Assembly: GCA_946965045.2 (NCBI GenBank)
Contig: OX337231.1
Coordinates: forward strand, 3,844,001 to 3,908,000
Length of the DNA stretch: 64,000 nt
Origin: Epithemia pelagica
Lineage: Eukaryota; Protista; Bacillariophyta
Direction: 5' to 3'
Positions 8,647 through 45,710 of this stretch are shown here, piece after piece. Under the pieces are notes generated by a model. That model saw only the letters and a list, made by a program, of their open reading frames with translations. It had not been told where the DNA came from and made no database searches. The translations under genes and the position numbers were made by a program. Within the stretch, counting starts at the first letter, position 1. The number at the start of each line of letters is the position of its first letter.

Positions 8647-10230
8647 TTACTTGCCATGCGCATCCCATACAAATCCAATCTCCTCCAACATCAAAATGCG
8701 ATCAACTGTCAATGAACTCGATTCTTTGCCTTCTTGTCGCTGCTGGTACTCTTGCCGTTGCGTTTCCACCCACTGACTCAGCTCCTTGTTTACAGAGTCA
8801 TCTTGTAGGACATTGCAGTGCCCGTGCATTTCTTTGAACTTTTTCAGTTCCTCGTATCGTTTCATCCATGTGCTTCCCCGTGTCCGTGTATCCCAAGAAA
8901 ATCCAATCTTCTCCAACATATCAACGCGCCAATCTGTCATTCTTTTCGTTTCTTTGCCTGCTTGTCGAAGTCGGTATGCTTCACGTTGTTTATACACCCA
9001 AAGACCCAGCTTTTTGTTTGGAGGGTACTGTTTGGGGACATTGCAGTGTCCATTACTTTGTTGGAACTCTTTCAATTCCTCGTATCGTTCCATCCATCCA
9101 CTTTCCTGTGGTTTCCAGACAAATCCAATCTCCTCCAACAGGGCAATGCGCTCAGCAGTCATTGCGCTTGATTGTTTACCTTTTTCTTGAAGTCTGTATT
9201 CAGTGCGTTGTTTATGCACCCACGTGCCTAATTCCTTATTAGCAGAGTCGTCTGAGGGGACGTTGCAGTGCCCGCGAGTTGCTTTGAACTGTTTCAGTTC
9301 CTCGTATCGTACCATCCACGTACTGTCCGGTACGTTCCAAACAAACCCAATCTTTTCCAACAAATTGATACGGTCGTCTGCCATAGGACTGACCTTTCCT
9401 TCTTTCCTTTTGCGGTAATCTCGTCTCTGTCTATCCACCCAATGCCCAAGCGAAGGGTTCTCCATGTACCGTTGTGGTACCATGCAATGGCCATTTTTCT
9501 TCTGAAACTGTACCAATTCTTGGTATCGAGTATTCCAAACAGTTTCTTTTGCGGAGTTTTTGGTAGTAGTTTCTGCGTCTTTGTATCCAAACAAATGAGC
9601 TTGTGAGCCTTACTGTTCCCATGCTGCATTCTGACAAGAACCCCTGCACAAAAGAGAAACACTTACTTGTTTCAGAAATCTCAGTGAGTGGGTCCCCGCC
9701 ATGCGAGTTTGCGGCATGTTCGGACTTCTTAGTTGTAGTTTCTACAAACAAATGAGATAAGCCTTGCTATTCTCATGCTGTATTTGTACAAGAACCACTG
9801 AATCAAAGAGAAACACTTACTTGTTTCAGAAGTCTCAGTGAGATGGTCCCCGTCATGTGAGTTTACGGCACTTTCAGACATCGTAGTTGTAGTTTCTAGG
9901 TCTTTTTATACGAACAAATGAGATAGTGAGCCTTGGTATTCCCATGTTGTATTCGGACAAGAACCACTGCATCAAAGAGAAACACTTACTTGTTTTAGAA
10001 GTCTCGTCAGTGAGTTCGTCCCCGTCACGTGACTTTGCGGCAAATTGGCGGATTAGTCTCCAGTTGTGCTTCGTGGTCAATAACTTTGAAAAGAGGCCAA
10101 TCCGTGGTGTTGTGCCATGATTGCCTTGTGGGGACAAATGAACAACGGAACGTTGAACAATAGGCTGATAAAGTGACGTTTTAGCCAGCGTTCGAATGGC
10201 TAACCATCGTGCTTGTCGATGAAATAGCAT
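8647..10230 (-). CDS. HA-repeat protein HA1 (4 helicase-associated domains) with predicted mitochondrial presequence, 438 aa, 4 exons
   Basis: Exons 10230-9990, 9895-9821, 9741-9667 and 9572-8647; GTAAGT donors, YAG acceptors, 1317 nt in frame. Repeats W..RY.EL..F...GHC.VP.....LG.WV..QR..Y...R...L..IGF.W (Pfam HA pattern). No D/E in the first 68 residues. Confidence 0.88.
9555..10045 (-). repeat. Three tandem exon+intron units (periods 169 and 154 bp) in HA1
   Basis: Donor GTAAGT begins (minus strand) at 9989, 9820 and 9666; the units are clearly homologous. Confidence 0.9.
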
Positions 10231-10659
10231 AATGTTGTTTTCTTTGAACTGGTGATCGAAGCTTGTCTTGTCTTCTGTATGTGTACAAAGAGCATTTATG
10301 AGCTTTGGTTTCCCCGTGGTTGTAACACTGTGGCCGAGGGATGCTCGTCGATATCAATCCAGCTTTGAGCTTACATGAAAACTTGGTGGTCGATATCTAT
10401 CAAGAAAACTTGGTTCAGTCCACTTCAGTCACGACATGTGGATCCCGCGCGAGCATCGCGTAAACGAAACGACCGGTAAGCACCTTTGCTCGAAGAAGTC
10501 GTGGGCTAGCATAAGGCATTCGTCACTGTCATTTCTTGCTTTTCCTCTCCATCATCATATTTCGTGCTGCTCTGTCACACTTTACTGGTGCATACTGTCA
10601 TTCCTACTCCTTTTCTGGATCATCATGTTCCGTGTTCCTCTGTCACACTCTTGCGAAGC

Positions 10660-11525
10660 ATATGAATTGTTTTGTTTGTCGAGACCTTCTCCAAGTTCCA
10701 CCAACGGACCAGAATCTCTTGACGGAACTGGGGTTGTTCGGCCATGAACCCAAGAATCTGCGTGCTAGATCAAAGTCTTCTTCTTTTTCCTGTCGTCGAA
10801 TCAAGACGGCCGCCTGATTGGGATCTTCCAGTGGATCCTTTTAGGTGCGTGATTGTTGGTTTCGTCGGTTTTGGACAAGGTCGGCGATTCGACCAACTAG
10901 AGTGCTGGGTGGTTGCAGGACGATCGTTTTTTGGCTCATAGCAAGTGATCGAGGTATACCGGGTCAGATTTTGAACGAGAATGGGACCGGCACGTACGGC
11001 ATAGACACAAGCCTTGGGAGGCCACGGCCGAGTAGTACCAGAAACAACAGCTGCTGCTGAGGTTTCGTCAAGATTGTTGCTGTTGTTGTTCGGTAGGACG
11101 CAATCTCCGGCGGCATAGACAAAGAGACACAAAATGAATTGTTTGGTGAAATGAACGGCAACCCATCCTTCAGAAGTATCGTTCAGCCATGGATCGTTGA
11201 GATGGTCGTTGTTTTGCAATAGTACGAAGACATGAGGGTGTAATCCATCCAACCTCCATCGAGATGCCGGAGTCATATGGCCAATTCAACACCGGCCACA
11301 CCGCGGCTCCCACACCAATTATCCGTAGTGGTTTCTTGTCGAATGATTGCTTGTTGTCGGGCGTCTTGCAAGCGTTGGATAAGGGCCGTAATGGGTAGAG
11401 TGGGAATGGTATACTCTTGTGGTCCTGGAATGACATGCCAGTCACGACTAGCACTGCCCACATCGAGCGACAGGACATCAAACGGAATGGTTTGTGAAGT
11501 GCTGGTAGAATTGGAATTTGCCACA
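10660..11525 (-). pseudogene. Fragmented FAD oxidoreductase copy (OR-A)
   Basis: Pieces PFDVLSLDVGSAS..., WPPKACVYAVRAGPILVQNL and ENDPLEDP... lie in different frames with large deletions relative to 28296-30203. Confidence 0.85.
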
Positions 11526-11994
11526 ACGGAATGGGGAAAAGGCCGTCACCGGCAAAGGTGCACAATCCAACGCGTCAACAAAGACGTTGAAGTATCAGTG
11601 ATTCTGTCTGCTGGGATCTTGTTTGATTCCATCATCAATTCATTGGATATTGTGTTGAAAGGTCGAAATACGCAGCGTTTTTCCAAACTGAACCATTCTT
11701 CTTCTTCCCTCGTGTTGTGTTTGTGTTGCAACTGTCATTCTTTAGAGTATAATAGTCCTCTTCGTTTCTTTCCTCGCTTTCTTGTTTGGTTGCCCCTTCG
11801 TTTTCAATAAGAAGAGAACCTTGACCCGGAGCGCTGGTTTGGCGAAGAGAAAACGAGAGACGGAAGTGGTCGACTTGCGATGAGTGGGCGAGTATGCGTG
11901 CTGGTAGAGCCCGGCGACCAACCCAACAGCGAGTCGCACACTAAACGAAAACGACAGACAGTGAAGATGGAATCCACCTTGGGGAATCTCAGTT

Positions 11995-12201
11995 GTGCTG
12001 TGTCTGCTTGAAACAAAGGTTACTCTTGACTGGGACTTTCTAGAGTACGATGGAGGCCATTTGACAGAATTTGCTGGTTACAATTGCCGTGACTACTCCA
12101 ACACCGTCCCAAACCCGTCCAGCGCCATGCGGAATCACCGCAAATGCGGTCTTTGTGTGCGTACGACGCCATTCCAAAACGATACAATCAATGAAATATA
12201 A
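11995..12201 (+). pseudogene. Disrupted copy of the BED-finger-like ORF at 25603-25983
   Basis: Near-identical to 25690-25900 but with CRDC changed to CRDY and a premature TAA (CAA in the other copy). Confidence 0.4.
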
Positions 12202-12633
12202 TCCGCATTATGCTTTGATGCAACTTCTGACCGATCGAGACAGTGTGACAATGCCAGAGCCAAGCAACAGACTGGTCTGTGTCAGTGACAAATACTTTTC
12301 CTTCCATCGTCAAATGATCGTATGCAACGCTATGCATCGCCAAGTGTACATCGGTAATGGTGTCGCGATATAGTCCTAGGACCCATTGTTTTTATCATCA
12401 AAGATACAACCAGTAACGCTACAGCAATAACTCATGCTCACATATTTCATTCTATAGTAATAACTCTTCAAACAAACTTGACGAAAAAGACAGTCATTCA
12501 GTCAATGAGCTCCATACTAGAGTCTCGTAAAAGCACAGAAGAAAAGCATCCACATCATTTTTCATTCAATGAGTTCATGATCTCGCTGCGATCAGGCATC
12601 ATCTGTCAGATCCTCTACACAACCGCATCCTTT

Positions 12634-14230
12634 TCAAACGTTTGCATCCCAAACAAATCCAATCTCCGCCAACATTGAAATACGCTCATCTGTCATTTGA
12701 CTCGATTCGTTGCCTTCTTGTCGAAGTCTGTATTCTGTACGTTGCGTTTCCACCCACTGACTCAGCTCTCTGTTTACAGAGTCATCTTCTGGGACATTGC
12801 AGTCTCCGTGAACTTCTTTAAACAGTTTCAGTTCCTCGTATCGTTTCATCCATGTGTTATCCCGTGTTCGCGTCTCCCAATTGAACCCAATCTTCTCTAA
12901 CATTTCAACACGCCAATCTGTCATTGTTTTCGATTCTATGCCTGCTTGTCGAAGTCGGTATGCTTCACGTTGTCTTCGCACCCACCGACCCAACTTTGGG
13001 CTTGGAGTGTAGTCCTGAGGGACATTGCAGTGCCCGTGACTTTGTTGGTACTCTTCCAGTTCCTCGTATCGCGCCATCCATGCGCTTTCCTGTAAATTCC
13101 AGACAAATCCAATCTCCTCCAACAAGGTAACCCGCTCACTTGTCATTTGACTCGACTGTTTACCTTCTTGTTGAAGTCGGTAGTCAGTGCGTTGTTTATG
13201 CACCCACGTACCGAGCTCCTTATTGTTGACAGAGTAGTCTCGAGGGACATTGCAATGTCCGTTAGTTGCTTTGAACTGTTTCAGTTCCTCGTATCGTGTC
13301 CTCCATGCGCTTTCCAATGGATTCCAGACAAATCCAATCTTTTCCAACAAGACTACTCGGTTGCCTGCCATTGGACTGCCAGTGCCTTCCTTCCCTCTGC
13401 GGTAGAGTTGTCTCTGTTTACCCACCCAATGCCCAAGCGAAGGGTTCTCCTTGTACCGATGTGGTACCATGCAATGACCATGTTTTTCCTGAAACTGGAC
13501 CAATTCTTGGTATTGAGCTTTCCACAAAATGTCATATTGGGACTTTTTGGTTGTAGTTTCTGCGTCTTTGCATACAAACAAATGATAAAGTGAGGCTTAC
13601 TATTTCCATGCTGCATTCTGACAAGAACCCCTGCGCAAAAGAGAAACACTTACTTGGTTCAGAAGTCTCAGTGAGATGGTCCCCGTCATGTGAGTTTGCG
13701 GCACTTTCAGACTTCTTAGTTGTAGTTTCTGCGTCTTTGTAAACAAACAAATGATATTGTGAGCCTTGCTATTCCCATACAGCATTCGAACAGGAACTAC
13801 TTTATCAAAGAGAAAGACTTACTTGTTTCAGAAGTTTCGGTGAGATGGTCCCCGTCATGTAAGTTTGCGGCACTTTCAGACTTCTTAGTTGTAGTTTCTA
13901 CGTCTTTGTATACGAACCAATGAGCTAGTGAGCTTTGCTATTCCCATGCTGCATTCTGAGAAGGACCACTGCATCAAAGAAAAAAGACTTACTTGTTTCA
14001 GAATTCGTAGTGAGTCCTTCCCCGTCCTGTGACTTTGCGGCAAAGTGGCGGATGGGTGTCCAGTTGTTCTTCGTGGTCAACAACTTTGAAAAGAGGTCAA
14101 TCCGTGGTGTTGTGTCATGATTGCCTTGCGGAAGCAAACGAACAATGGAACTTCGATCAAGTCGGCGAGACGCTGACGTTTTAGCCAGCGTTCGAGTGGC
14201 CAACCAACGTGCTTGTCGATGAAATAGCAT
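12634..14230 (-). CDS. HA-repeat protein HA2 (4 HA domains) with predicted mitochondrial presequence, 437 aa, 4 exons
   Basis: Exons 14230-13993, 13897-13823, 13728-13654 and 13559-12634; introns of 95, 94 and 94 nt with GTAAGT..YAG; 1314 nt in frame. Presequence begins MLFHRQARWLATRTLAKTS. Confidence 0.88.
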
Positions 14231-14596
14231 ACTGTTGTTTTCTACGAACTTGTGTTCAAAGCTAGTCTTGTCTCTTATGTACCAAGAGAAATTATGAGCC
14301 GTCGTTGTGAAACTGTGGCCGGAGTATGCTCGGTCGATATGAATCAAGTTTTTGTGTGGTTTACATGAAAACTTGGGCACAGTCCGAATCAGTCCATTTC
14401 AGTCACGAGTTGTGGATCCCGCGCGAGCATCGCATCGAAGTTACCATAGGAATACCAAACTTCTGCTCGAAGAAGCCGTGCTATATAGCTCGAAAGCATC
14501 AGGCATTGGTCCGGAGGAGGAAAGAAAGCACTGTATCACTCTCATTCCTCTGCATTGTCATGTTTCGTGTTCCTCTGCCTCATTCTCTTGGTGCCC

Positions 14597-16424
14597 TTAG
14601 ATTGTTTCGTTTGCCGAGGCCCTCTCAAACTTCCACCAACCTCTTGACGGAATTGGGGTTGGTCGGCCATGACGCGCAAGACGCTCCATGCTTGCACAAA
14701 GTCGACATTGTCATCTTGTCGTCGAATCAAGACGGCCGCTTGACAGGGATCTTCCAGTGGATCGTTTTCAAAGCGTGGTTGTTGCTGTTGTCGGTTTTGG
14801 AGATAGGCGGTGACATCGTCCTGAGCGTCGTTTTGTTGGGTTTGGTGCTCCACGGAAGAAATGGACGACGACGACGACGAGTCGATTGCATTACAGGTGG
14901 TATCTTGATGTTTGTCAGGCGTCATTTGAAACAAGCGCATAAAGTTGGAATCGATCCGATCCTTCATGGCAAACACCCATGCTCCATACACATAAATCCC
15001 AAAGAGAAGACCCAAAGCCTTTCCCGGTGGCCGCGCGTCGCAGACCAAGAGTCGGAGAAAGTCGGTTTGGGGCTGATATTCGACCAACTCGATTGATGCT
15101 TGTTTCGATGGATTCGTCAATAGCAAGTAATTGAGGTACCGGGTCAGATTTTGCACGAGAATCGGACCGGCCCGTACGGCATAGACACCAGCCTTGGGAG
15201 GCCATGCCCTACCAGTGTCTACTGAGGACTTGTCGTCGTCGTTGTCCTTGTTCTGGTGCTTGTTGTTGTTTGGTTGGACCATGGTGGCACAATCACCGGC
15301 GGCAAAGACAAAGGGATGCGAAGTGGATTGCAAAGTCTGATGAACGGCAATCCATCCTTCGGGAGTAACCTTCAGCCATGAGTGGTTGTCGGTGTTTGTC
15401 GTGAAAGGACCTTGTGGTGGTTGATTTGGAAACGACATGCAATTGGCGCGAACCAATTCTTGCGGACCGGCACCGGTTGCCCAAATACAATGGTCAAAGG
15501 GCAATTCTAATGGAGTGGGTGGTTCTGGTTCTGGTTCTTCATTCGTATTGTTCGCAGTGCCTGGTTCGTGATGTTGGTGTTGTTGGAGAAGGAGTTTGTT
15601 CGATAAAACTTGTGTGACGCGACAATTGGGTTGGACTGTGATATTGTTGTGGGCAAAGAGCTCGTGTAGCTTGGCTCGTACAATGGTGCTTTCGTGAGGC
15701 CACAGCGTTGGAGATGACGACACAAGAGTGACGTGTGGATGTAAACCATCCAAACTCCATCGAGATGCCAGAGCCAAGGCCAATTCAACACCGGCCACAC
15801 CGGCTCCCACTACAATGATCCGTAGTGGTTTCTGGTCGAAGGATTGTTGCTGTTGTTGTTTTTGTTTTTGTATAAGAGCTTGTTGTCGGGCGTCTTGCAA
15901 TCGTTGGACCAAGGCTGCAATGGGTCGAGTGGGAATGGTATACTCTTGCGCTCCTGGAATGACATGCCAGTCGCGACTGGCACTGCCGACATCGAGCGAC
16001 AGGACATCAAACGGAATGGTTGTTTGTGACGTCGTAAGAGTCTTGTCCTGGACATTGACCTGAGTGACAGTTTCGGGTACAAACTGAATGTTGGCCAGAT
16101 CAATTTGTGTCGTTGCAACGTTGGGATACAAATTCGCAATGGCACCGGGTACCATCCCCGAATAGGAAGCCTACGATTGACCATCAATCTAGGTAACCTT
16201 GAATTCATCTTGTGGTCGATGTTTCATGGCTTGAATCACTTGCAAATGAGCAGGACCACCGCCGAAAAAGACCAACTGCAAGGGTTTGTTGGTCGTCGTC
16301 GTCGTCGTCGTCGTCGTCATTCTCCTCGAGGGTAGGATTTCCAGCATCTGTAACTGGACGTCGGTCTTCGTTCGGTCCGAATCGTGCATCGGTTAGTACG
16401 ACAAAGGGTCCTCCTCCTATACAT
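14597..16424 (-). pseudogene. Full-length but inactivated FAD oxidoreductase copy (OR-B)
   Basis: Two in-frame TAGs near 16170-16190 (KVT*IDGQS*ASYSGMVP against KVTLIDGQSQASYSGMVP in OR-D). Also a frameshift in the presequence, a ~10-nt deletion near 14640, and GGGHAH changed to GGGPAH. Confidence 0.88.
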
Positions 16425-19680: not shown

Positions 19681-21517
19681 TTATTGGTGCCTACCAGTTG
19701 TTTCGTTTGCCGAGGCTCTCTCCAACTTCCACCACTGGTCCAAAACCTCTTGACGGAATTGGGGTTGGTCGGCCATGATGCGCAAGACGCTCCATGCTTG
19801 CACAAAGTCGACACTGTCATCTTGTCGTCGAATCAAGACGGCTGCTTGATAGGGATCTTCCAGTGGATCGTTTTCGGGGCGTGGTTGTTGCTTTCGTCGG
19901 TTTTCGATATAGTCGGTGACATCGTCCTGGGCGTCGTATTGTTGGGTTTGGTACGGTACGGAAGAACTGGAGGACGACGAAGAAGAGTCGGTTGCATTAG
20001 AAGTTGGGTCTTGGTGTTTGTCCTGCGTCATTTGAAACAAGCGCATAAAGTTGGAATCGATCCGATCCTTCATGGCAAAGACCCATGCTCCATACACATA
20101 AATCCCAAAGCGAAGGCCCAAAGCCTTGCCGGGTGGCCGCGCGTCGCAGACCAAGAGTCGGAGAAAGTCGGTTTGGGGTTGATATTCGACCAGCACGAGT
20201 GATGCTTGGTTTGATGGAGTCGCTAACAACAAGTCATTGAGGTACCGGGTCGGATTTTGCACGAGAATGGGACCGGCACGTACGGCATAGACACCAGCCT
20301 TGGGAGGCCATGCCTTGGTAGTTAAAACTGGAGACTTGTCGTCTTTGTGGTTGTTGTTTCGTTGGACCATGGTGGCACAATCTCCGGCGGCAAAGACAAA
20401 AGGATGCGAAGTGGATTGCAACGTGGGATGAACGGCAATCCATCCTTCGGGAGTAACCTCTAGCCATGAGTGGTTGTCGGTGTTTGTCGTAGAAGGACCT
20501 TGTGCTTGTTCATTTGAAGACGACAGGCAATTGGTGCGAACCAAGTCTTGGGGACCGGCACCGGTTGCCCAAATACAATGGTCAAAAGGCAATTCCAGTG
20601 GAGTGGGTGGTTCTGGTTCCGGTCCTTCATTTGTATTCTTCACATTGCCTGGTTCGTTTTGTGGCTGTTGTTGGAGAAGGAGTTTGTCCGGTAAGACTTG
20701 TGTGACACGACAATGAGGTTGGAGTGTGATATTGTTGTGGGCAGAGAGCTCGTGTAGCTTGGCTTTTACAATGGTGCTTTCGTGAGGCCACACGGTTGGA
20801 GACGACGATACGAGAGTGACGTGTGGATTTAAACCATCCAAACTCCATCGAGAAGCCAGAGCCAAGGCCAATTCAACACCAGCCACACCGGCTCCCACCA
20901 CAATAATCCGTAGGGGTTTCTTTGATTGCTGTTGTTGGTTGCGTATTAGAGCTTGTTGTCGGGCGTCTTGCAATCGTTGGACCAAGGCCGCAATGGGTCG
21001 AGTGGGAATGGTATACTCTTGCGCTCCTGGAATGACATGCCAGTCACGACTGGCACTGCCCACATCGAGCGACAGGACATCAAACGGAAAGGTTGTTTGA
21101 GACGTCGTAAGAGTCTTGTCCTGCACATTTACCCGAGTAACAGTTTCGGGTACAAAGTGAATGTTGGATGCTTTCGACAAGGCTGCCAAATCAATTTGTG
21201 TCGCAATGGCACCTGGTACCATACCTGAATACGAAGCTTGTGATTGACCGTCCACCAACGTAAGCTTGACTTGTTCTTGTGATCGATGTTTCATGGCTTG
21301 AATCACTTGCAAATGAGCAGGACCACCGCCGACAAAGACCAACTGCAAGGGTTTGTTGGTCACCGCCGAACAAGACCAAGTGCGACGGTTTGTGGGTCGT
21401 CGTCGAAGTCATGCTCCTCCTCCAGGCCAGAATGCGCCAGCACCCGAGACTGGTCCTCGCTCTCCGTTCGGTGCCATTCGCGTATCTGGTAATACTACAA
21501 AGGGCCCTCCTATACAT
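19681..21517 (-). pseudogene. Chimeric FAD oxidoreductase copy (OR-C) with a frameshift at the first GxGxxG motif
   Basis: The ATG at 21517 gives MYRRALCS...MTSTTTHKPSHLVLFGG, and a 37-bp duplication then shifts the frame. The downstream 560 codons (19681-21363) are open but begin with GTG. Confidence 0.8.
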
Positions 21518-22288: not shown

Positions 22289-23828
22289 CTATTTGTTCGT
22301 TTCATAGTTGTTTTTCTCAAGATAGTTCCTTACCCACTCCAATACTTCTCGATCATCCTCGTCAAAGAGTCCAATATCGTACAACATCTTGAGACGTTCT
22401 ATTGTAAGCGACCAAGGTGTATTTCCAAGCATCCACCAAAATAGCTGATTTCTCTGGTTTCTCATCCAACTCATCAGTGGAGATGGATCGTGTTTGTTCA
22501 TTAAAGGAAATCTTCCGCGTCTTTGTTTGTATTCCACCAGTTGTTGATATCGCTGCATCCAGGCATCATCCATTGCATCCCAAACAAATCCAATCTCCTC
22601 CAGCATAGAAAAGCGCTCATTCGTCATTGCACTCGACTGTTTGTCTTTTTGTCGAAGTCGGTAGTATTTACGTTGGTTATTTACCCATATACCCAGTCCC
22701 TTATTGGCAGAGTAGGTTTGAGGGACATTGCAGTGCCCGTGAGTTGCTTTGAACTGTATAAGTTCGTCGTATCGAGTCATCCAAGCACTTTCCAGTGCAT
22801 TCCATACAAATCCAATCTTTTCCAACATACCAATGCGCTCAGTAGTCATTGCGCTTGATTCTTTGCTTCCTTGTCGAAGTCGGTAGTCTCTGCGTTGGTT
22901 ATTTACCCATATAGCCAGCCCCTTATTGGCAGAGTAGTCTTGAGGGACATTGCAGTGCCCGTGAGTTGCTTTGAACTGTATTAGTTCGTCGTATCGAGTC
23001 ATCCAAGCACTTTCCAGTGCATTCCATACAAATCCAATCTTTTCCAACATACCAATGCGCTCAGTAGTCATTGCGCTTGATTCTTTGCTTCCTTGTCGAA
23101 GTCGGTAGTCTCTGCGTTGGTTATTTACCCATATAGCCAGCCCCTTATTGGCAGAGTAGTCTTGAGGGACATTGCAGTGCCCGTGAGTTGCTTTGAACTG
23201 TATTAGTTCGTCGTATCGAGTCATCCATGCGTTTCCCTGTGCATTCCATACAAATCCAATCTTTTCCAACAAGACTACACGGTTGCCTGCCATTGGACTG
23301 CCAGTGCCTTCCTTCCCTCTGCGGAAGAGTTGTCTCTGTGTATCCACCCAATTCCCCAAGGGAGGATTCTCCTCGTACCGTTTGGGCACCATGCAATGAC
23401 CATGTTTTTTCTGAAACTCAATTAATTCTTGGTATCGAGTCTTCCAAAGAGTTTCTTTTTCGGAGTCTTTGGTAGTAGTTTCTGTGTCGTTGTATCCGAA
23501 CAAATGAGCCAGTGAGCATTTTTTGGTTTCTTGCTGTATTTCTACAAGAAAAGCTCTTTCGCGCATCAAAAATTGACTTACTTGAACTTGATTTTTCATT
23601 CAGTCGCTCCAAATCAATTGCCTTGGCGACAAATTGGCGGGTTGGTGTCCAGTTGTGCTTCGTGGTCAACAACTTTGTAAGAAGATCATTCACGGGTCTT
23701 TCATGGTTTCTTTGCGGTACCAAGCAAGTATAGTAGCGTTGAATAACAGGGCCGCAGAAAGGTCGTTTTGCCATGTTTCGAAGAGGCAACCGACGGACCT
23801 GTGGGAGAAGGGACAGGAATCTCGCCAT
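22289..23828 (-). CDS. HA-repeat protein HA3 (5 HA domains) with predicted mitochondrial presequence, 479 aa, 2 exons
   Basis: Exons 23828-23582 and 23481-22289; 100-nt GTAAGT..CAG intron; 1440 nt in frame. Internal repeats have a 222-bp (74-aa) period and repeats 2 and 3 are almost identical. N-terminus MARFLSLLPQVRRLPLR. Confidence 0.88.
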
Positions 23829-25602: not shown

Positions 25603-25983
25603 GTGGTCGCGCGCCTGGCGACCAACCCAACTGGGGAGAAATGGATTCCACTAAACGAAAACGACAGTCAAGATGGAATCCACTTTGGTGTGCTGTGTCT
25701 GCTTGAAACAAAGGTTACTCTTGACTGGGACTTTCTAGAGTACGATGGAGACCATTTGACAGAATTTGCTGGTTACAATTGCCGTGACTGCTCCAACGCC
25801 GTCCCAAAAACGTCCAGCGCCATGAGGAATCACCGCAAATGCGGTCTTTGTGTGCGTACGACGCCATTCCAAAACGATACAATCAATGAAATACAATCCG
25901 CATTATGCTTTGATGCAACTTCTGACCGATCGAAACAGTGTGACAATGCCAGAGCCAAGCAACAGACTGTTCTGTGTCAGTGA
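25603..25983 (+). other. Short ORF resembling a BED zinc finger (possible transposase remnant)
   Basis: WDFLEY...CRDCSNAVPKTSSAMRNHRKC fits the pattern W.xF...C-x2-C...TS.M..H..C. Confidence 0.35.
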
Positions 25984-26332
25984 CACATAATTTTCCTTCC
26001 ATCGTCCAATGATCGTATGCAACTCTACGCATCGCCCACAGTGTACATCGGTAATGGTGTCCCGGTGTATAGTCCTTGGACCCATTGCTTTTACCTTCAC
26101 ACATACCACCAGTAACGCTACAGCAATAACTCATGCTCACATATTTCATTCTATAGTAATAACTCTTCAAACAAACTTGACGAAAAAGACAGTCATTCAG
26201 TCAATGAGCTCCATACTAGAGTCTCGTAAAAGCACAGAAGAAAAGCATCCACATCATTTTTCATTCAGTGAGTTCATGATCTCGCTACGGTCAGGCATCA
26301 TCTGTCAGATCCTCTACACAACCGCATCCTGT

Positions 26333-27929
26333 TCAAACGTTTGCATCCCAAACAAATCCAATCTCCTCCAACATTGAAATACGCTCATCTGTCATTTGAC
26401 TCGATTCGTTGCCTTCTTGTCGAAGTCTGTATTCTGTACGTTGCGTTTCCACCCACTGACTCAGCTCTCTGTTTACAGAGTCATCTTCTGGGACATTGCA
26501 GTCTCCGTGAACTTCTTTAAACAGTTTCAGTTCCTCGTATCGTTTCATCCATGTGTTATCCCGTGTCCGCGTCTCCCAAGAAAATCCAATCTTCTCCAAC
26601 ATTTCAACACGCCAATCTGTCATTGTTTTCGATTCTATGCCTGCTTGTCGAAGTCGGTATGCTTCACGTTGTCTTCGCACCCACCGACCCAACTTTGGGC
26701 TTGGAGTGTAGTCCTGAGGGACATTGCAGTGCCCGTGACTTTGTTGGTACTCTTCCAATTCCTCGTATCGCGCCATCCATGCGCTTTCCTGTAAATTCCA
26801 GACAAATCCAATCTCCTCCAACAAGGTAACCCGCTCACTTGTCATTTGACTCGACTGTTTACCTTCTTGTTGAAGTCGGTAGTCAGTGCGTTGTTTATGC
26901 ACCCACGTACCGAGCTCTTTATTGTTGACAGAGTAGTCTCGAGGGACATTGCAATGTCCGTTAGTTGCTTTGAACTGTTTCAGTTCCTCGTATCGTGTCC
27001 TCCATGCGCTTTCCAATGGATTCCAGACAAATCCAATCTTTTCCAACAAGACTACTCGGTTGCCTGCCATTGGACTGCCAGTGCCTTCCTTCCCTCTGCG
27101 GTAGAGTTGTCTCTGTTTACCCACCCAATGCCCAAGCGAAGGGTTCTCCTTGCACCGATGTGGTACCATGCAATGACCATGTTTTTCCTGAAACTGGACC
27201 AATTCTTGGTATTGAGCTTTCCACAAAATGTCATATTGGGACTTTTTGGTTGTAGTTTCTGCGTCTTTGCATACAAACAAATGATATAGTGAGGCTTACT
27301 ATTCCCATGCTGCATTCTGACAAGAACCCCTGCGCAAAAGAGAAACACTTACTTGGTTCAGAATTCTCAGTGAGATGGTCCCCGTCATGTGAGTTTGCGG
27401 CACTTTCAGACTTCTTAGTTGTAGTTTCTGCGTCTTTGTAAACAAACAAATGATATTGTTAGCCTTGCTATTCCCATACAGCATTCGAACAGGAACTACT
27501 TTATCAAAGAGAAACACTTACTTGTTTCAGAAGTCTCCGTGAGATGGTCCCCGTCATGTAAGTTTGCGGCACTTTCCGACTTCCTTGTTGTAGTTTCTAC
27601 GTCTTTGTAAACGAACCAATGAGCTAGTGAGCTTTGCTATTCCCATGCTGCATTCTGAGAAGGACCACTGCATCAAAGAAAAAAGACTTACTTGTTTCAG
27701 AATTCGTAGTGAGTCCTTCCCCGTCCTGTGACTTTGCGGCAAAGTGGCGGACGGGTGTCCAGTTGTTCTTCGTGGTCAACAACTTTGAAAAGAGGTCAAT
27801 CCGTGGTGTTGTGTCATGATTGCCTTGCGGAAGCAAACGAACAATGGAACTTCGATCAAGTCGGCGAGACGCTGACGTTTTAGCCAGCGTTCGAGTGGCC
27901 AACCAACGTGCTTGTCGATGAAATAGCAT
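26333..27929 (-). CDS. HA-repeat protein HA4 (near-identical to HA2), 437 aa, 4 exons
   Basis: Exons 27929-27692, 27596-27522, 27427-27353 and 27258-26333; the last exon differs from HA2 by Y>C, N>S and A>E. Confidence 0.88.
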
Positions 27930-28295
27930 ACTGTTGTTTTCTACGAACTTGTGTTCAAAGCTAGTCTTGTCTCTTATGTACCAAGAGAAATTATGAGCCG
28001 TCGTTGTGAAACTGTGGCCGGAGTATGCTCGGTCGATATGAATCAAGTTTTTGTGTGGTTTACATGAAAACTTGGGCACAGTCCGAATCAGTCCATTTCA
28101 GTCACGAGTTGTGGATCCCGCGCGAGCATCGCATCGAAGCTACCATAGGAATACCAAACTTCTGCTCGAAGAAGCCGTGCTATATAGCTCGAAAGCATCA
28201 GGCATTGGTCCGGAGGAGGAAAGAAAGCACTGTATCACTGTCATTCCTCTGCATTGTCATGTTTCGTGTTCCCCTGCCTCACTCAATTGGTGACT

Positions 28296-30203
28296 TTAGA
28301 TTGTTTCGTTTGCCGAGGCCCTCTCAAACTTCCACCAATGATCCAGGACCTCTTGACGGAATTGGGGTTGGTCGGCCATGATGCGCAAGACGCTCCATGC
28401 TTGCACAAAGTCGACATTGTCATCTTGTCGTCGAATCAAGACGGCCGCTTGATAGGGATCTTCCAGTGGATCGTTTTCAGAGCGTGGTTGTTGCTTTCGC
28501 CGGTTTTCGAGATAGTCGGTGACATCGTCCTGAGCATCGTACTGTTGGGTTTGGTACGGTACGGAAGAACTGGAGGACGACGAGGACGACGACGACGACG
28601 AGTCGGTTGCATTAGAAGTTGGGTCTTGGTGTTTGACCTGCGTCATTTGAAACAAGCGCATAAAGTTGGAATCGATCCGATCCTTCATGGCAAACACCCA
28701 GGCTCCATACACATAGATACCAAATCGAAGACCCAAGGCCTTGCCGGGTGGCCGCGAGTCGCAGACCAAGAGTCGGAAAAAGTCGGTTTGGGGTTGATAT
28801 TCGACCAACTCGAGTTGTTGTTGGTGGGAGGAGGATTGATTCTTGGAGAAGACTCGCAAGCGATCGAGGTAACGGGTCAGATTTTGCACGAGAATCGGAC
28901 CGGCCCTTACGGCATAGACACCAGCCTTGGGAGGCCATGCCTTGGTAGTTAAAACTGGAGACTTGTCGTCTTTGTCGTTGTTATTGTAGTTGTTGTTGTT
29001 TGGTGGGACCATGGTGGCACAATCACCGGCGGCAAAGACAAAGGGATGCGAAATTGACTGCAAGGTGGGATGAACGGCAATCCATCCTTCGGAAGTAACC
29101 TTCAGCCATGAGTGGTTGTCGGTGTTTGTCGTAGAAGGACCTTGTGGTGGTTGATTTGGAGACGACAGGCAATTGGTGCGAATTAATTCTTGGGGCCCGG
29201 CACCGGTTGCCCAAATGCAATGGTCAAAGGGCAATTCTAGTGAACTAGGTGGTTCTGGTTCTGGTTCTCCATTCTTAGTCTTCACATTGCCTGGTTCGTT
29301 TTGTTGCTGTTGCTGGAGAATGAGTTTGTCCGGCAACACTTGTTTGACACGACAATAGGGTTGGAGTGTGATATTGTTGTGGGCAAACAGCTCACGTAGC
29401 TTGGCTTGTACAATGGTGCTTTCGTGAGGCCACAGCGTTGGAGACGACGATACGAGAGTGACATGAGGATACAATCCATCCAAACTCCATCGAGATGCCA
29501 GAGCCAAGGCCAATTCAACACCAGCCACACCGGCTCCCACCACAATAATCCGTAGCGGGTTCTTGTCGAACGGTAGTTTTTGTTGTTGTTTCTGTAACAG
29601 AGCTTGTTGTCGGGCGTGTTGCAAGCGTTGGACCAAGGCCGCAATGGGTCGAGTGGGAATGGTATACTTTTGCGCTCCCGGAATGACATGCCAGTCGCGA
29701 CTGGCACTGCCCACATCGAGCGACAGGACATCAAACGAAATGGTTGTTTGTGTAGTGTTGGAAGAATTGGAGTTTGTCCCACCTTCGTTGCCACTTGCGA
29801 ACGTCGTAAGAGTCTTGTCCTGGACATTGACTCGAGTAACAGTTTCGGGTACAAACTGAATGTTGGAATCCTTGGCCAAGGCTGCCAAATCAATTTGCGT
29901 GGTTTCCACGTTGGGATACAAATTCGCGATGGCACCGGGTACCATGCCTGAATACGAAGCTTGTGATTGACCATCAATTAAGGTAACCTTGACTTGATCT
30001 TGTGGTCGATGTTTCATGGCTTGAATCACTTGCAAATGAGCATGACCGCCGCCCACCAAGACCAAGTGCAAGGGTTTGTGAGTCGTCGTTGAAGTCATGC
30101 TCCTCCTCCAGGGTTGAATTCGCCAGCACCCGAGACTGGTCGTCGCTCTCCGTTCGGTCCGAATCGTGCATCGGTTAGTACTACAAAGGGCCCTCCTATG
30201 CAT
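28296..30203 (-). CDS. FAD-dependent pyridine nucleotide-disulfide oxidoreductase (N-terminal-to-SelD / TIGR03169-like) with predicted mitochondrial presequence (OR-D, the intact copy)
   Basis: 635-aa ORF from ATG with motifs LVLVGGGHAH, SYSGMVPG, FDVLSLDVGS, VVGAGVAGVELA, WATGA, FAAGDCA and PKAGVYAVRAGP. Arg-rich 35-aa N-terminal extension; no SelD domain follows. Confidence 0.9.
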   Translation of the reverse strand: MHRRALCSTNRCTIRTERRATTSLGCWRIQPWRRSMTSTTTHKPLHLVLVGGGHAHLQVIQAMKHRPQDQVKVTLIDGQSQASYSGMVPGAIANLYPNVETTQIDLAALAKDSNIQFVPETVTRVNVQDKTLTTFASGNEGGTNSNSSNTTQTTISFDVLSLDVGSASRDWHVIPGAQKYTIPTRPIAALVQRLQHARQQALLQKQQQKLPFDKNPLRIIVVGAGVAGVELALALASRWSLDGLYPHVTLVSSSPTLWPHESTIVQAKLRELFAHNNITLQPYCRVKQVLPDKLILQQQQQNEPGNVKTKNGEPEPEPPSSLELPFDHCIWATGAGPQELIRTNCLSSPNQPPQGPSTTNTDNHSWLKVTSEGWIAVHPTLQSISHPFVFAAGDCATMVPPNNNNYNNNDKDDKSPVLTTKAWPPKAGVYAVRAGPILVQNLTRYLDRLRVFSKNQSSSHQQQLELVEYQPQTDFFRLLVCDSRPPGKALGLRFGIYVYGAWVFAMKDRIDSNFMRLFQMTQVKHQDPTSNATDSSSSSSSSSSSSSVPYQTQQYDAQDDVTDYLENRRKQQPRSENDPLEDPYQAAVLIRRQDDNVDFVQAWSVLRIMADQPQFRQEVLDHWWKFERASANETI

Positions 30204-40035: not shown

Positions 40036-40140
40036 CAACGAAATCTCACCTTAACTGTGGCTACTACCTATTACTAGAGCGGACCCATGCGGGAGAGCAC
40101 TCACGAACAAACAAAGGACTATTGTTTCTTCTGTTGTCTA

Positions 40141-40296
40141 TCTATGGAAGACGAATACATGGCCGTGAAAAGGAAAGTGAACGATGGGGTAGATGTGCTA
40201 GTGTTTGGATTGGGTGCCTATCTATGAAAGACGAATACATGGCCGTGAAAAGGAAAGTGAACGATGGGGTAGATGTGCTAGTGTTTGGATTGGGTG
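40141..40296 (+). repeat. 80-bp tandem duplication upstream of HA5
   Basis: TCTATG(G/A)AAGACGAATACATGGCCGTGAAAAGGAAAGTGAACGATGGGGTAGATGTGCTAGTGTTTGGATTGGGTG at 40141 and 40221. Confidence 0.92.
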
Positions 40297-40407: not shown

Positions 40408-41950
40408 ATGTTCTTTTCTCCACAGGTCCGTGGACTTTCTCTTGGAGCTATGGCAAAAAGGCCTGTATGTCATCCAGTTGTTCGCCGGGGCTTTGCTTGC
40501 TTGGTACACCAGCAAAAAGGCCATGGTAGAACCCTCAGAGATCTTCTCTCAAAAATTTGGGTAATGAAGCACAACTGGCCACCAATCCGCCTATTTACCG
40601 CAAAGGCAATTGATGTGGAGGGAGTGAATGCAAAAACTAGTTCAAGTAAGATAATTTTCGATGCGTAAGAGCTTGTCTTGTCCAAAACCAGCAGGACAAC
40701 AACGACAAAGCTCACAAGTTCGTTTGTTTCGATACAACGACGCAGAAACTACAACCAAAAAGTCACAAAATGAGATTCTTTGGGAGACGCGATATCAAGA
40801 ACTGATTGATTTTTGCACAGAGCATGGTCATTGCAGGGTACCAATACGGTACAAGGATAACCTTTCGCTTGGGTGTTGGGTGGGTAGACAGAGACAAGAT
40901 TACCGCAAAAGGAAAGAAGGAAAGGTCAGTCCTATGGCAGACGACCGTATCAATTTGTTGGAAAAGATTGGATTTGTCTGGAATGCACTGGAAAGTACGT
41001 GGATGGCACGATACAACGAACTGAAACAGTTCCAAGAAAGTCATGGACACTGCAATGTCCCTCGAGACTACTCTGCCAATAAGGAGCTGGGTCTATGGGT
41101 GAGTAATCAACGTACACAATACCGACTTCGACAAGAAGGTAATCAATCAAGTACAATGACAAATGAGCGCATTTCTATGTTGGAGGAGATTGGATTTATT
41201 TGGGATGCACAGAAAAGTGCGTGGATGACGCGATACGAGGAATTGATAGAGTTCAAACAACGTCACGGACACTGTAATGTCCCTAGCGATTACTCTGCCA
41301 ATAAGGAGCTGGGTCAGTGGGTGCATACACAACGTAAACAATACCGACTTCTACAAGAAGGCAAACAATCGAGTCAAATGACAAATGAGCGCATTTCTAT
41401 GTTGGAGGAGATTGGATTTATTTGGGATGCACAGGAAAGTGCGTGGATGACGCGATACGAGGAATTGATAGGGTTCAAACAACGTCACGGACACTGCAAT
41501 GTCCCTAGCGATTACTCTGCCAATAAGGGGCTGGGTCAGTGGGTGCATACACAACGTACACAATACCGACTTCAACAAGAAAGTAATCAATCAAGCTCAA
41601 TGACCAATGAGCGCATTTCTATGCTGGAGGAGATTGGATTTGTATGGGACGCATTGGAGGATGCCTGGATGCAGCGATATCAAGAACTGGTAGAATACAA
41701 GAGAAGACGAGGACGATTTCCAAGAATTAAAAAACTCGATCCATCTGCACTGATGAGTTGGATGTTCAACCAGAGAAATCAGCTATTTTGGTGGATGCAA
41801 GGAAATACACCTTGGTCGCTTACAATAGAACGTCTCAAGATGTTGTACGATATTGGATTCTTTGACGAAGACGATCGAGAAGTCTTGGAGTGGGTAAGGA
41901 ACTATCTTGAAAAAAACAACGATGAAATGAACAAAAAGGACGATGGATAA
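40408..41950 (+). CDS. HA-repeat protein HA5 (5 HA domains) with predicted mitochondrial presequence, 480 aa, 2 exons
   Basis: Exons 40408-40645 and 40746-41950; 100-nt GTAAGA..CAG intron; 1443 nt in frame; 222-bp repeat period. Confidence 0.88.
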
Positions 41951-44215: not shown

Positions 44216-44538
44216 TGATAGTTACCAATAGAGTGTGGCCAACAAAACATTACGATCCTGAAGAAGAAGGAATAACAGAAATGCGGTCCTTCTCGCAGTC
44301 AAGGCCAGATGGAGCACAGACGGAGGCAACGGCTTTTTCGTATTCTATGTTCGCTTCACACTCCACACCGAGCCATCATGCTCGCAAATCGTGACAGAAA
44401 TGGACTGATTCGGACGTTGACCAAGTTTTCATGTATAACCAAAAACGTGATGGATACCATGGGCCGCAATCGGGTAATCCAAAGCTAAAATATGATCTTG
44501 GGGCACGATTTGATAACCAGTTCGGAGCAAAAAACACG

Positions 44539-45710
44539 ATGATTTTTCATGGACAAACAAAAGTTGGGTGGCCATTCGAATGCTGGCCATAACCCCAGTG
44601 AATCGGCTTCTTGTTCGACGATCCTTTGCTCATTTGCGGTCACAAGGCAATCTTGGCACACCACCACTGTTTGGCCTCTTTTCAACGTTATTGACCATGA
44701 AGCACAACTGGACACCAACCCGCCAATTTGCAGCAAAGGTACATGACGGGGACGGGGACGGACCCAGTGAGAATTCTGGAACACGTAAGTTTTGATCCAG
44801 TGGTTCTTGTCAGAAAGCAGAATGGGAAAGCCCAGGCTCACTAGCTCATTTAGTCGAAAACATTGATGAAGAAACTACTTCCACAAAGTCCAAAAATGAG
44901 ATTCTTTGGAATACTCGATACCAAGAATTGATTGACTTTCAGAAAAGGCATGGTCATTGCAGGGTACCAAAAGGGTACAAGGAGAACCCGCCTTTGGCGA
45001 ATTGGGTGGATAAACAGAGACAAGTTTACCGCAGAGGGAAGGAAGGCACTGGCAGTCCAATGGCAGGCAACCGAGTGGTCTTATTGGAAAAGATTGGGTT
45101 TGTTTGGAACCCACAGGAAAGTGTATGGATGGCACGATACGAGCAACTGAAACAGTTCCAACAAAGTCATGGACACTGCAATGTCCCTCGAGACTACTCT
45201 GCCAATAAGAAGCTGGGCTTCTGGGGAATGACGCAACGTACTCAATACCGACTTCGGCAAGAAGGTAAACAAGCAAGTCACATGACAAATGAGCGCGTCG
45301 CTATGCTAGAGGAGATTGGATTTAATTGGAATGTACAGAGAAGTGCATGGATGATTCGATACGAGGACCTGATAGAGTTTAAGCAAAGTCACGGAAATTG
45401 CAACGTCCCTCAGAACTACTCTGCCAATAAGGCGCTAGGCCGGTGGGTGCATTCGCAACGTAAACAATACCGACTTCTACAAGAAGGTGACCAATCAAGT
45501 CCCATGACAAATGATCGCTTTACCCTGATGGAGAAGATTGCATCTGTATTCTGGTGGATGCTTGGGTATACACCACCTCGGTCGCTCACAAATGAACGTC
45601 TCAAGATGCTGTACGACATTGGACTCTTTGACGATGATCCAGAACTCTTGGAGTGGGTAAGGAAGTATCTTCAAAAGAACAACTATGACACGAACAAAAG
45701 GGACGATTGA
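44539..45710 (+). pseudogene. HA6: frameshifted exon 1, one intron (44785-44871), three HA domains plus a partly deleted last domain
   Basis: ATG ATT TTT CAT GGA CAA is homologous to MLFHRQ, but 2 extra nt lead to an early TAA. About 40 aa are missing before FWWMLG. Confidence 0.8.

Follow-up and report, generated by a model that had tools for sequence, protein, structure and literature searches.

Two ways in which internal duplication of a gene can raise the number of its introns have been described. In the Rogers-type model, a new intron is generated from a duplicated exonic segment with AGGT, and the encoded protein is left unchanged (PMC3443670, PMC4974935); examples are the potato RdRp gene and vertebrate ATP2A1 (Hellsten 2011, cited there) (PMC4974935). 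The second, in which internal tandem duplication multiplies an intron that already exists, is described for Arabidopsis TOUCH3 (Knowles & McLysaght 2006, as summarized in PMC4974935), and similar observations, of internal duplications with whole introns, are attributed to Gao & Lynch 2009 (as cited in PMC4974935). Multiplication of existing introns by internal duplication is left out of the intron-gain reviews. Here, a stretch of 64,000 nucleotides of the Epithemia pelagica genome (contig OX337231.1, positions 3,844,001 to 3,908,000; termed the window, in which all positions given below are counted) was analyzed. The window contains a cluster of six genes encoding HA-domain proteins, HA1 to HA6, and it is likely that in the common ancestor of three of them, HA1, HA2, and HA4, an existing intron was multiplied by internal tandem duplication and that the copies are spliced.

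The six genes are located on the minus strand at 8647-10230 (HA1), 12634-14230 (HA2), 22289-23828 (HA3), and 26333-27929 (HA4), and on the plus strand at 40408-41950 (HA5) and 44580-45710 (HA6). Matches to the Pfam model PF03457 reached 183-324 bits against a curated cut-off of 28.4, with three to five HA repeats per gene, which identified all six products as HA-domain proteins. The repeats are encoded by a large last exon, the length of which is 2 modulo 3 in every gene, while exon 1 is in all six cases an ATG-initiated open frame of 68-82 codons that ends in phase 1 at the donor site. The leader specified by exon 1 is basic and contains few acidic residues (over the six genes, its first 60 residues include 0-3 D/E and 7-11 K/R), and we take it to resemble an organelle-targeting presequence. 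In HA3, HA5, and HA6, the leader and the HA repeats are separated by a single intron, of 100 nt in HA3 (23482-23581, minus strand), 100 nt in HA5 (40646-40745, plus strand, GTAAGA..CAG), and 87 nt in HA6 (44785-44871, plus strand, GTAAGT..AAG).

The same region of HA1, HA2, and HA4 is organized as a tandem array, detected with Tandem Repeats Finder (TRF). The repeated unit starts with the tail of exon 1 (its last 50 nt), continues through an intron (79-95 nt), and closes with 25 nt from the head of the last exon, and it is present three times head to tail. In each gene, the three units are contiguous and can be aligned end to end, with an intron inside each unit. The HA1 array (9548-10039; this and all further HA1, HA2, and HA4 features are on the minus strand) comprises units of 169, 154, and 169 bp, and TRF reported a period of 154 with 2.7 copies at 9605-10042 (score 506). 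The arrays of HA2 (13541-14042, score 671) and HA4 (27240-27741, score 664) both have a period of 169 in 3.0 copies. Exon 1 of HA1 (9990-10230) encodes the basic leader, with its ATG at 10230, and ends in phase 1, and the last exon (8647-9572) encodes four HA repeats (PF03457); the corresponding exons of HA2 are at 13993-14230 and 12634-13559, and those of HA4 at 27692-27929 and 26333-27258, again with four HA repeats in the last exon.

Candidate introns 1 to 3 of HA1 occupy 9896-9989 (94 nt, GTAAGT..TAG), 9742-9820 (79 nt), and 9573-9666 (94 nt); the second is 15 nt shorter than intron 2 of HA2, which was accounted for by alignment gaps of 3 and 12 nt. The introns of HA2 are at 13898-13992 (95 nt), 13729-13822 (94 nt), and 13560-13653 (94 nt), and those of HA4 at 27597-27691 (95 nt), 27428-27521 (94 nt), and 27259-27352 (94 nt). 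Each of the nine copied introns begins with GTAAGT and ends with TAG or CAG. In seven of them, an AAG is located 6 nt upstream of the conserved acceptor, and its use would give 81-nt exons, also in frame; the downstream acceptor is the only one common to all 12 introns. Inspection by eye of the unit comparison revealed no convincing junction microhomology at the ends of the duplication.

Between the introns of each array lie two micro-exons, at 9821-9895 and 9667-9741 in HA1, at 13823-13897 and 13654-13728 in HA2, and at 27522-27596 and 27353-27427 in HA4. All six are exactly 75 nt long and open in phase 1, while the lengths of the copied introns vary (79, 94, or 95 nt). Each micro-exon matches the last-exon head over nucleotides 1-25 and the exon-1 tail over its final 50 nt, and is thus a chimera of the two flanking exons that keeps the frame after splicing. 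The encoded peptides are variants of KTTTKKSE-SAANSHDGDHLTETSET and can be summarized as K-TTT(K/T/R)(K/M)SE(S/H)A(A/V)N(S/L)H(D/G)GD(H/P)LTE(T/I/N)SE(T/P). A first-pass annotation of this DNA had proposed one intron in HA3, HA5, and HA6 and three homologous introns of 79-95 nt in HA1, HA2, and HA4, separated by chimeric exons of exactly 75 nt in a symmetric phase that keeps the frame and permits in-frame skipping. The coordinates, the alignment, the comparison of heads and tails, and the 1-1 phase of the micro-exons bear out each of these points.

The 12 units of the six genes could be aligned over their whole length, introns included, and the copied introns are homologous to the single intron that the relatives carry at the same site. 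Maximum-likelihood trees were prepared both from the 12 introns alone and from the whole units. In these trees, the intron of HA6 joined the nine copied ones in a single clade (100/99), with HA3 and HA5 apart; each HA2/HA4 pair clustered at 98-100, and the position-3 introns of HA1, HA2, and HA4 clustered together (91/93). The three introns group with the single intron of the paralogues, as the first-pass annotation had anticipated, and the nearest single-intron relative of the triplicated unit is that of HA6.

The placement of HA6 bears on the direction of the change. It could be proposed that the three-unit state is the older one and that a single-intron gene, HA6 especially, was produced by collapse through unequal crossing-over, which would make this a case of intron loss and not of gain. 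The HA6 intron does lie within the unresolved clade of the nine copies in the intron-only tree, and the cluster shows active recombination and gene conversion. In the whole-unit tree, however, HA6 was found outside the nine units, with weak support (70/80), and HA3 and HA5 are clearly outside the nine-copy clade. Moreover, a chimeric micro-exon is possible only from a single-intron ancestor, which means that a gain occurred at some point. Collapse from an ancestral three-unit state is thus regarded as very improbable.

The clustering of the position-3 introns across genes indicates that the triplication, as a gain from the single-intron state, predates the split of HA1 from HA2/HA4. Taken with the position of the other paralogues in the tree, it would have been a single event, later than the divergence from HA3/HA5 and earlier than the separation of HA1 from the HA2/HA4 ancestor. 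The intron copies within a gene are only 79-91% identical to each other, which argues that the event is not recent, and the earlier description of an intron gain ‘captured in place’ overstates its recency. The two micro-exons are closer to each other than to the parent exon ends. This fits two successive duplications or a later homogenisation, and the data do not choose between them.

The cluster has been reshaped by further duplication. HA2 with its flanks gave rise to HA4 by a duplication at 13.7-kb spacing (11994-14273 vs 25689-27972, with 96-99% identity over the stretches compared), which included the neighbouring Pyr_redox_2 gene. Paralogues of the latter (PF07992) were observed at 14542-16155, 19681-21363, and 28296-30203. 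Repeats at 10751-11565 match these paralogues and suggest that a fragment lies beside HA1. In micro-exon 1, HA2 and HA4 differ at five of 75 positions, three of which fall within 10 nt, compared with a divergence of ~ 1-2% elsewhere in the duplicate; a mutation of several nucleotides at once, or the conversion of a small tract, may account for this excess.

HA1 has a composite pattern of similarity. Part of the sequence for its first HA repeat (9257-9494) is nearest to HA5 (40824-41061), with 89% identity over 238 nt and core 90-nt windows that are near-identical, and the region around acceptor 3 (9540-9640) is nearest to HA3, while HA1 is otherwise nearest to HA2/HA4. Silent divergence between HA1 and HA2 amounted to 0.14-0.19 in the 5′ module and 0.45 in the last exon. 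This mosaic suggests ectopic gene conversion among members of the cluster.

Whether the copied introns are removed was judged from the reading frame and from comparison with other introns of the genome. The unit length of 169 bp cannot be divided by three, while the 75 nt that remain after splicing can, and reading would therefore continue in frame from the leader to the HA repeats only if each short intron is removed. Between copies, the introns vary in length by 1 and 15 nt, and the micro-exons are without any insertion or deletion (indel). A further indication came from P0124, a protein encoded on another public contig, which reads in frame from an ATG within intron 3 into the last exon. 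The copy in the window cannot be read in this way, which implies a frame-changing indel in intron 3 (its length not divisible by three), such as would be expected in noncoding sequence.

The GTAAGT donor motif is not enriched in the window, where 17 occurrences were found against 18 expected, 11 of the 17 being within HA introns, and for this reason tubulin introns from elsewhere in the genome were taken as a control. In two alpha-tubulin genes of the same genome, protein homology delimits introns of 84 and 88 nt. Their donors are GTAAGA or GTACGT and their acceptors YAG, and in one of these introns a CTCAC motif is located ~ 25 nt upstream of the acceptor. The HA introns are 79-100 nt long, have GTAAG donors, and carry a conserved GCTCAC..CTCATTTG preceding the acceptor; they resemble the control introns and are therefore typical for this genome. 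Flanks were joined, as short stretches and by script, only for the tubulin control introns. For the HA genes, frames were checked exon by exon in scripts, and the last exon and exon 1 were searched separately. The last exons of HA1 and HA2 are under purifying selection (dN/dS 0.35), which indicates that the genes are live. From these features of the sequence, all three introns would be removed from each transcript and the micro-exons would be translated.

A number of observations weigh against an inherited triplication with spliced and translated copies. The identity between HA1 and HA2 is similar in the micro-exons (88-92%) and in the introns (84-89%), and the micro-exon dN/dS of 0.68 is based on only 15 changes and is indistinguishable from neutral evolution. 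In the tree, introns 1 and 2 are not sorted by position. The active gene conversion among the genes makes the order of events uncertain, and the triplicated 5′ module might have moved between paralogues rather than having been inherited.

The main rival explanation is skipping or one long intron. In this case, the triplication would be real and silent at the protein level, either because splicing proceeds from the first donor to the last acceptor, removing a composite intron of ~ 417-433 nt, or because the micro-exons are mostly skipped, and the mRNA would have the ancestral two-exon form. The 75-nt length and the 1-1 phase would allow skipping in frame, and the micro-exon peptides, in which no significant constraint was seen, have diverged about as fast as the introns. 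Note, however, that all internal donors and acceptors are canonical in HA1, HA2, and HA4 despite 8-17% divergence of HA1 from HA2/HA4, and that all six micro-exons remained open at exactly 75 nt while the introns gained indels. In addition, four of the five differences between HA2 and HA4 in micro-exon 1 are synonymous. The control introns of this genome measure 84-88 nt, and genomes with such short introns typically recognise each intron individually, which favours the removal of each copy. A protein-silent triplication is accordingly considered unlikely, and individual splicing of the three introns is preferred.

A further explanation would place the entire upstream region outside the coding sequence, with translation starting at an internal Met of the last exon and the repeats forming part of an untranslated leader or of dead sequence. 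Public prokaryote-style gene calls (the 278-aa P0001 and P0122) do begin at such an internal ATG, and exon 1 has a dN/dS of ~ 1.1. Those calls, however, cut off the first HA repeat, which extends upstream exactly to the acceptor. The ATG-initiated frames of exon 1, of 68-82 codons and with a phase-1 end at a GTAAG donor in six out of six genes, argue in the same direction, as does the leader motif LLTTKHNW..RQFAAK, which is common to genes whose introns have diverged. A noncoding upstream region is therefore given very little credence.

With the copies taken as spliced introns, the following history can be proposed. The ancestral gene would have had two exons, encoding the basic leader and the HA-repeat array, separated by a phase-1 intron. 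A segment of 169 bp, with one end 50 nt ahead of the donor and the other 25 nt beyond the acceptor, would then have been tandemly duplicated, either twice in succession or by one triplication. Each extra copy would have supplied a full intron, including a donor, branch region, and acceptor of its own, and would have added a 75-nt exon in which the head of the last exon is joined to the tail of exon 1. The triplicated gene would have given rise to HA1 and to the ancestor of HA2 and HA4, and these two would have separated later through the recent duplication at 13.7-kb spacing.

The predicted proteins of HA1, HA2, and HA4 would as a result be extended by two 25-residue spacers, rich in Ser, Thr, Asp, and Glu, between the leader and the first HA repeat. 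Judged by their rate of change, the most likely effect of the inserted peptides is a near-neutral extension of the spacer. It is also conceivable, though improbable, that the 169-bp unit is a variable-number repeat, with the number of units differing by strain or haplotype, and/or that the phase 1-1 micro-exons are alternatively included. If so, the spacer between leader and HA array would be tunable in steps of 25 residues, and the birth of a new protein repeat, with introns as its joints, could be observed live at this locus. Relatives with two or four units were found neither in the genome itself nor in an exact-pattern scan of metagenome contigs.

A second public contig in ENA (797,818 bp) encodes the HA-related proteins P0005, P0124, P0121, P0002, and P0007, and may represent another haplotype or strain. 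Versions at least 90% identical are encoded by this second public assembly or haplotype, the HA1-like P0005 being ~ 98% identical to HA1 in a residue-by-residue comparison. P0124 falls in one 90% cluster with HA2/HA4, and P0002 and P0121 are HA5-like but differ from HA5 in how many HA repeats they have.

The distribution of the unit was examined across the genome, which comprises 60.5 Mb in 23 contigs. A DNA search located the unit at five places, all in the cluster, namely in HA1, HA2, and HA4 and, more weakly, in HA5 and HA6, and a search with the leader (exon 1) gave matches in the HA cluster only. An Rfam search of 9400-14300 returned no match at E <= 1 and thus gave no sign of a known RNA hosted in the conserved intron. 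Among named proteins, the closest to the HA array come from diatoms (Cyclotella, Cyclostephanos, Cylindrotheca, and Seminavis), with 33-35% identity, and the protein search found no transcriptome-derived relative closer than ~ 45% identity. The window has a G+C content of ~ 44-55% per 2-kb window and contains long open frames.

Other features of the cluster concern the remaining parts of the genes. HA3, HA5, and HA6 end in a C-terminal tail (..WWM.G.TPWSLT.ERLKMLYDIG.FD..LEWVR.YL.KNNY.TNK) that HA1, HA2, and HA4 do not have, and its absence sets the triplicated group apart by a second derived character. Arrays of 222-bp units, each corresponding to one HA repeat and present in ~ 3 copies, were observed in HA3 (22569-23271) and HA5 (40956-41653), where the copies are 93% and 88% identical, respectively, which points to recent amplification or homogenisation of whole repeats within single genes. 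Directly upstream of HA5, there is an 80-bp tandem duplication (40138-40296; 2.0 copies, 98% identical). In HA6, an ancestral-looking start, ATGATTTTTCAT (cf. MLFH in HA1), is retained at 44520-44600 but does not share its frame with the remainder of exon 1, whose open frame starts at a downstream ATG (44580); the HA repeats number only three. The leader of HA6 may have been shortened, or the gene may be decaying.

Compared with the described routes of intron gain, HA1, HA2, and HA4 are a well-preserved, though not recent, multiplication of an existing intron by a mechanism that has already been described, and because of that earlier description the locus opens no new question. It offers a clean and self-documenting example in which the number of introns rises without any new splice signal and the single-intron relatives adjoin in the same cluster. 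It also illustrates that an intron lets a gene tolerate a duplication with a length, 169 bp, that is not a multiple of three. The example may be of use in teaching, in the curation of gene models in this genome, and in surveys of intron gain that separate multiplication from true creation.

The Rogers-type model shares with the HA genes a within-gene tandem genomic duplication that raises the intron count. It differs in that the HA introns copy an old intron with its own splice sites, and in that each unit adds 25 codons, giving 50 residues in total. De novo creation of this type was therefore rejected for the HA genes, as the extra introns are not exonic AGGT-bounded sequence and the coding sequence is changed. 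The first-pass view of ‘intron gain by tandem genomic duplication’ accordingly holds in so far as a tandem triplication spans the intron; it does not hold for the creation of splice sites, since no new ones arose and an existing intron was copied.

Introner elements (PMC9860276) resemble the HA arrays in that several near-identical short introns are found in one gene, but the HA unit has no genome-wide family. An introner or transposon origin was rejected, since the unit is confined to the cluster, with no dispersed copies in unrelated genes. Tandem exon duplication and exon shuffling likewise involve an in-frame phase 1-1 exon, and there too splicing absorbs a unit that is not a multiple of three. 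In those processes, however, the breakpoints lie in introns, whereas in the HA genes they lie inside both flanking exons, and the new exon is a chimera of two ends and not the copy of an exon.

The closest parallel is TOUCH3, in so far as it can be compared through its description in PMC4974935. In both cases, there are two extra tandem copies of a segment with an entire intron and some exon on both sides, the number of introns rises from one to three, the flanks supply new internal exons, and the splice sites come with the copied segment instead of being created. The HA case differs from TOUCH3, as described, in that it is found in a diatom-like alga, concerns a stand-alone HA-repeat protein, and has its one-intron paralogues in the same cluster.

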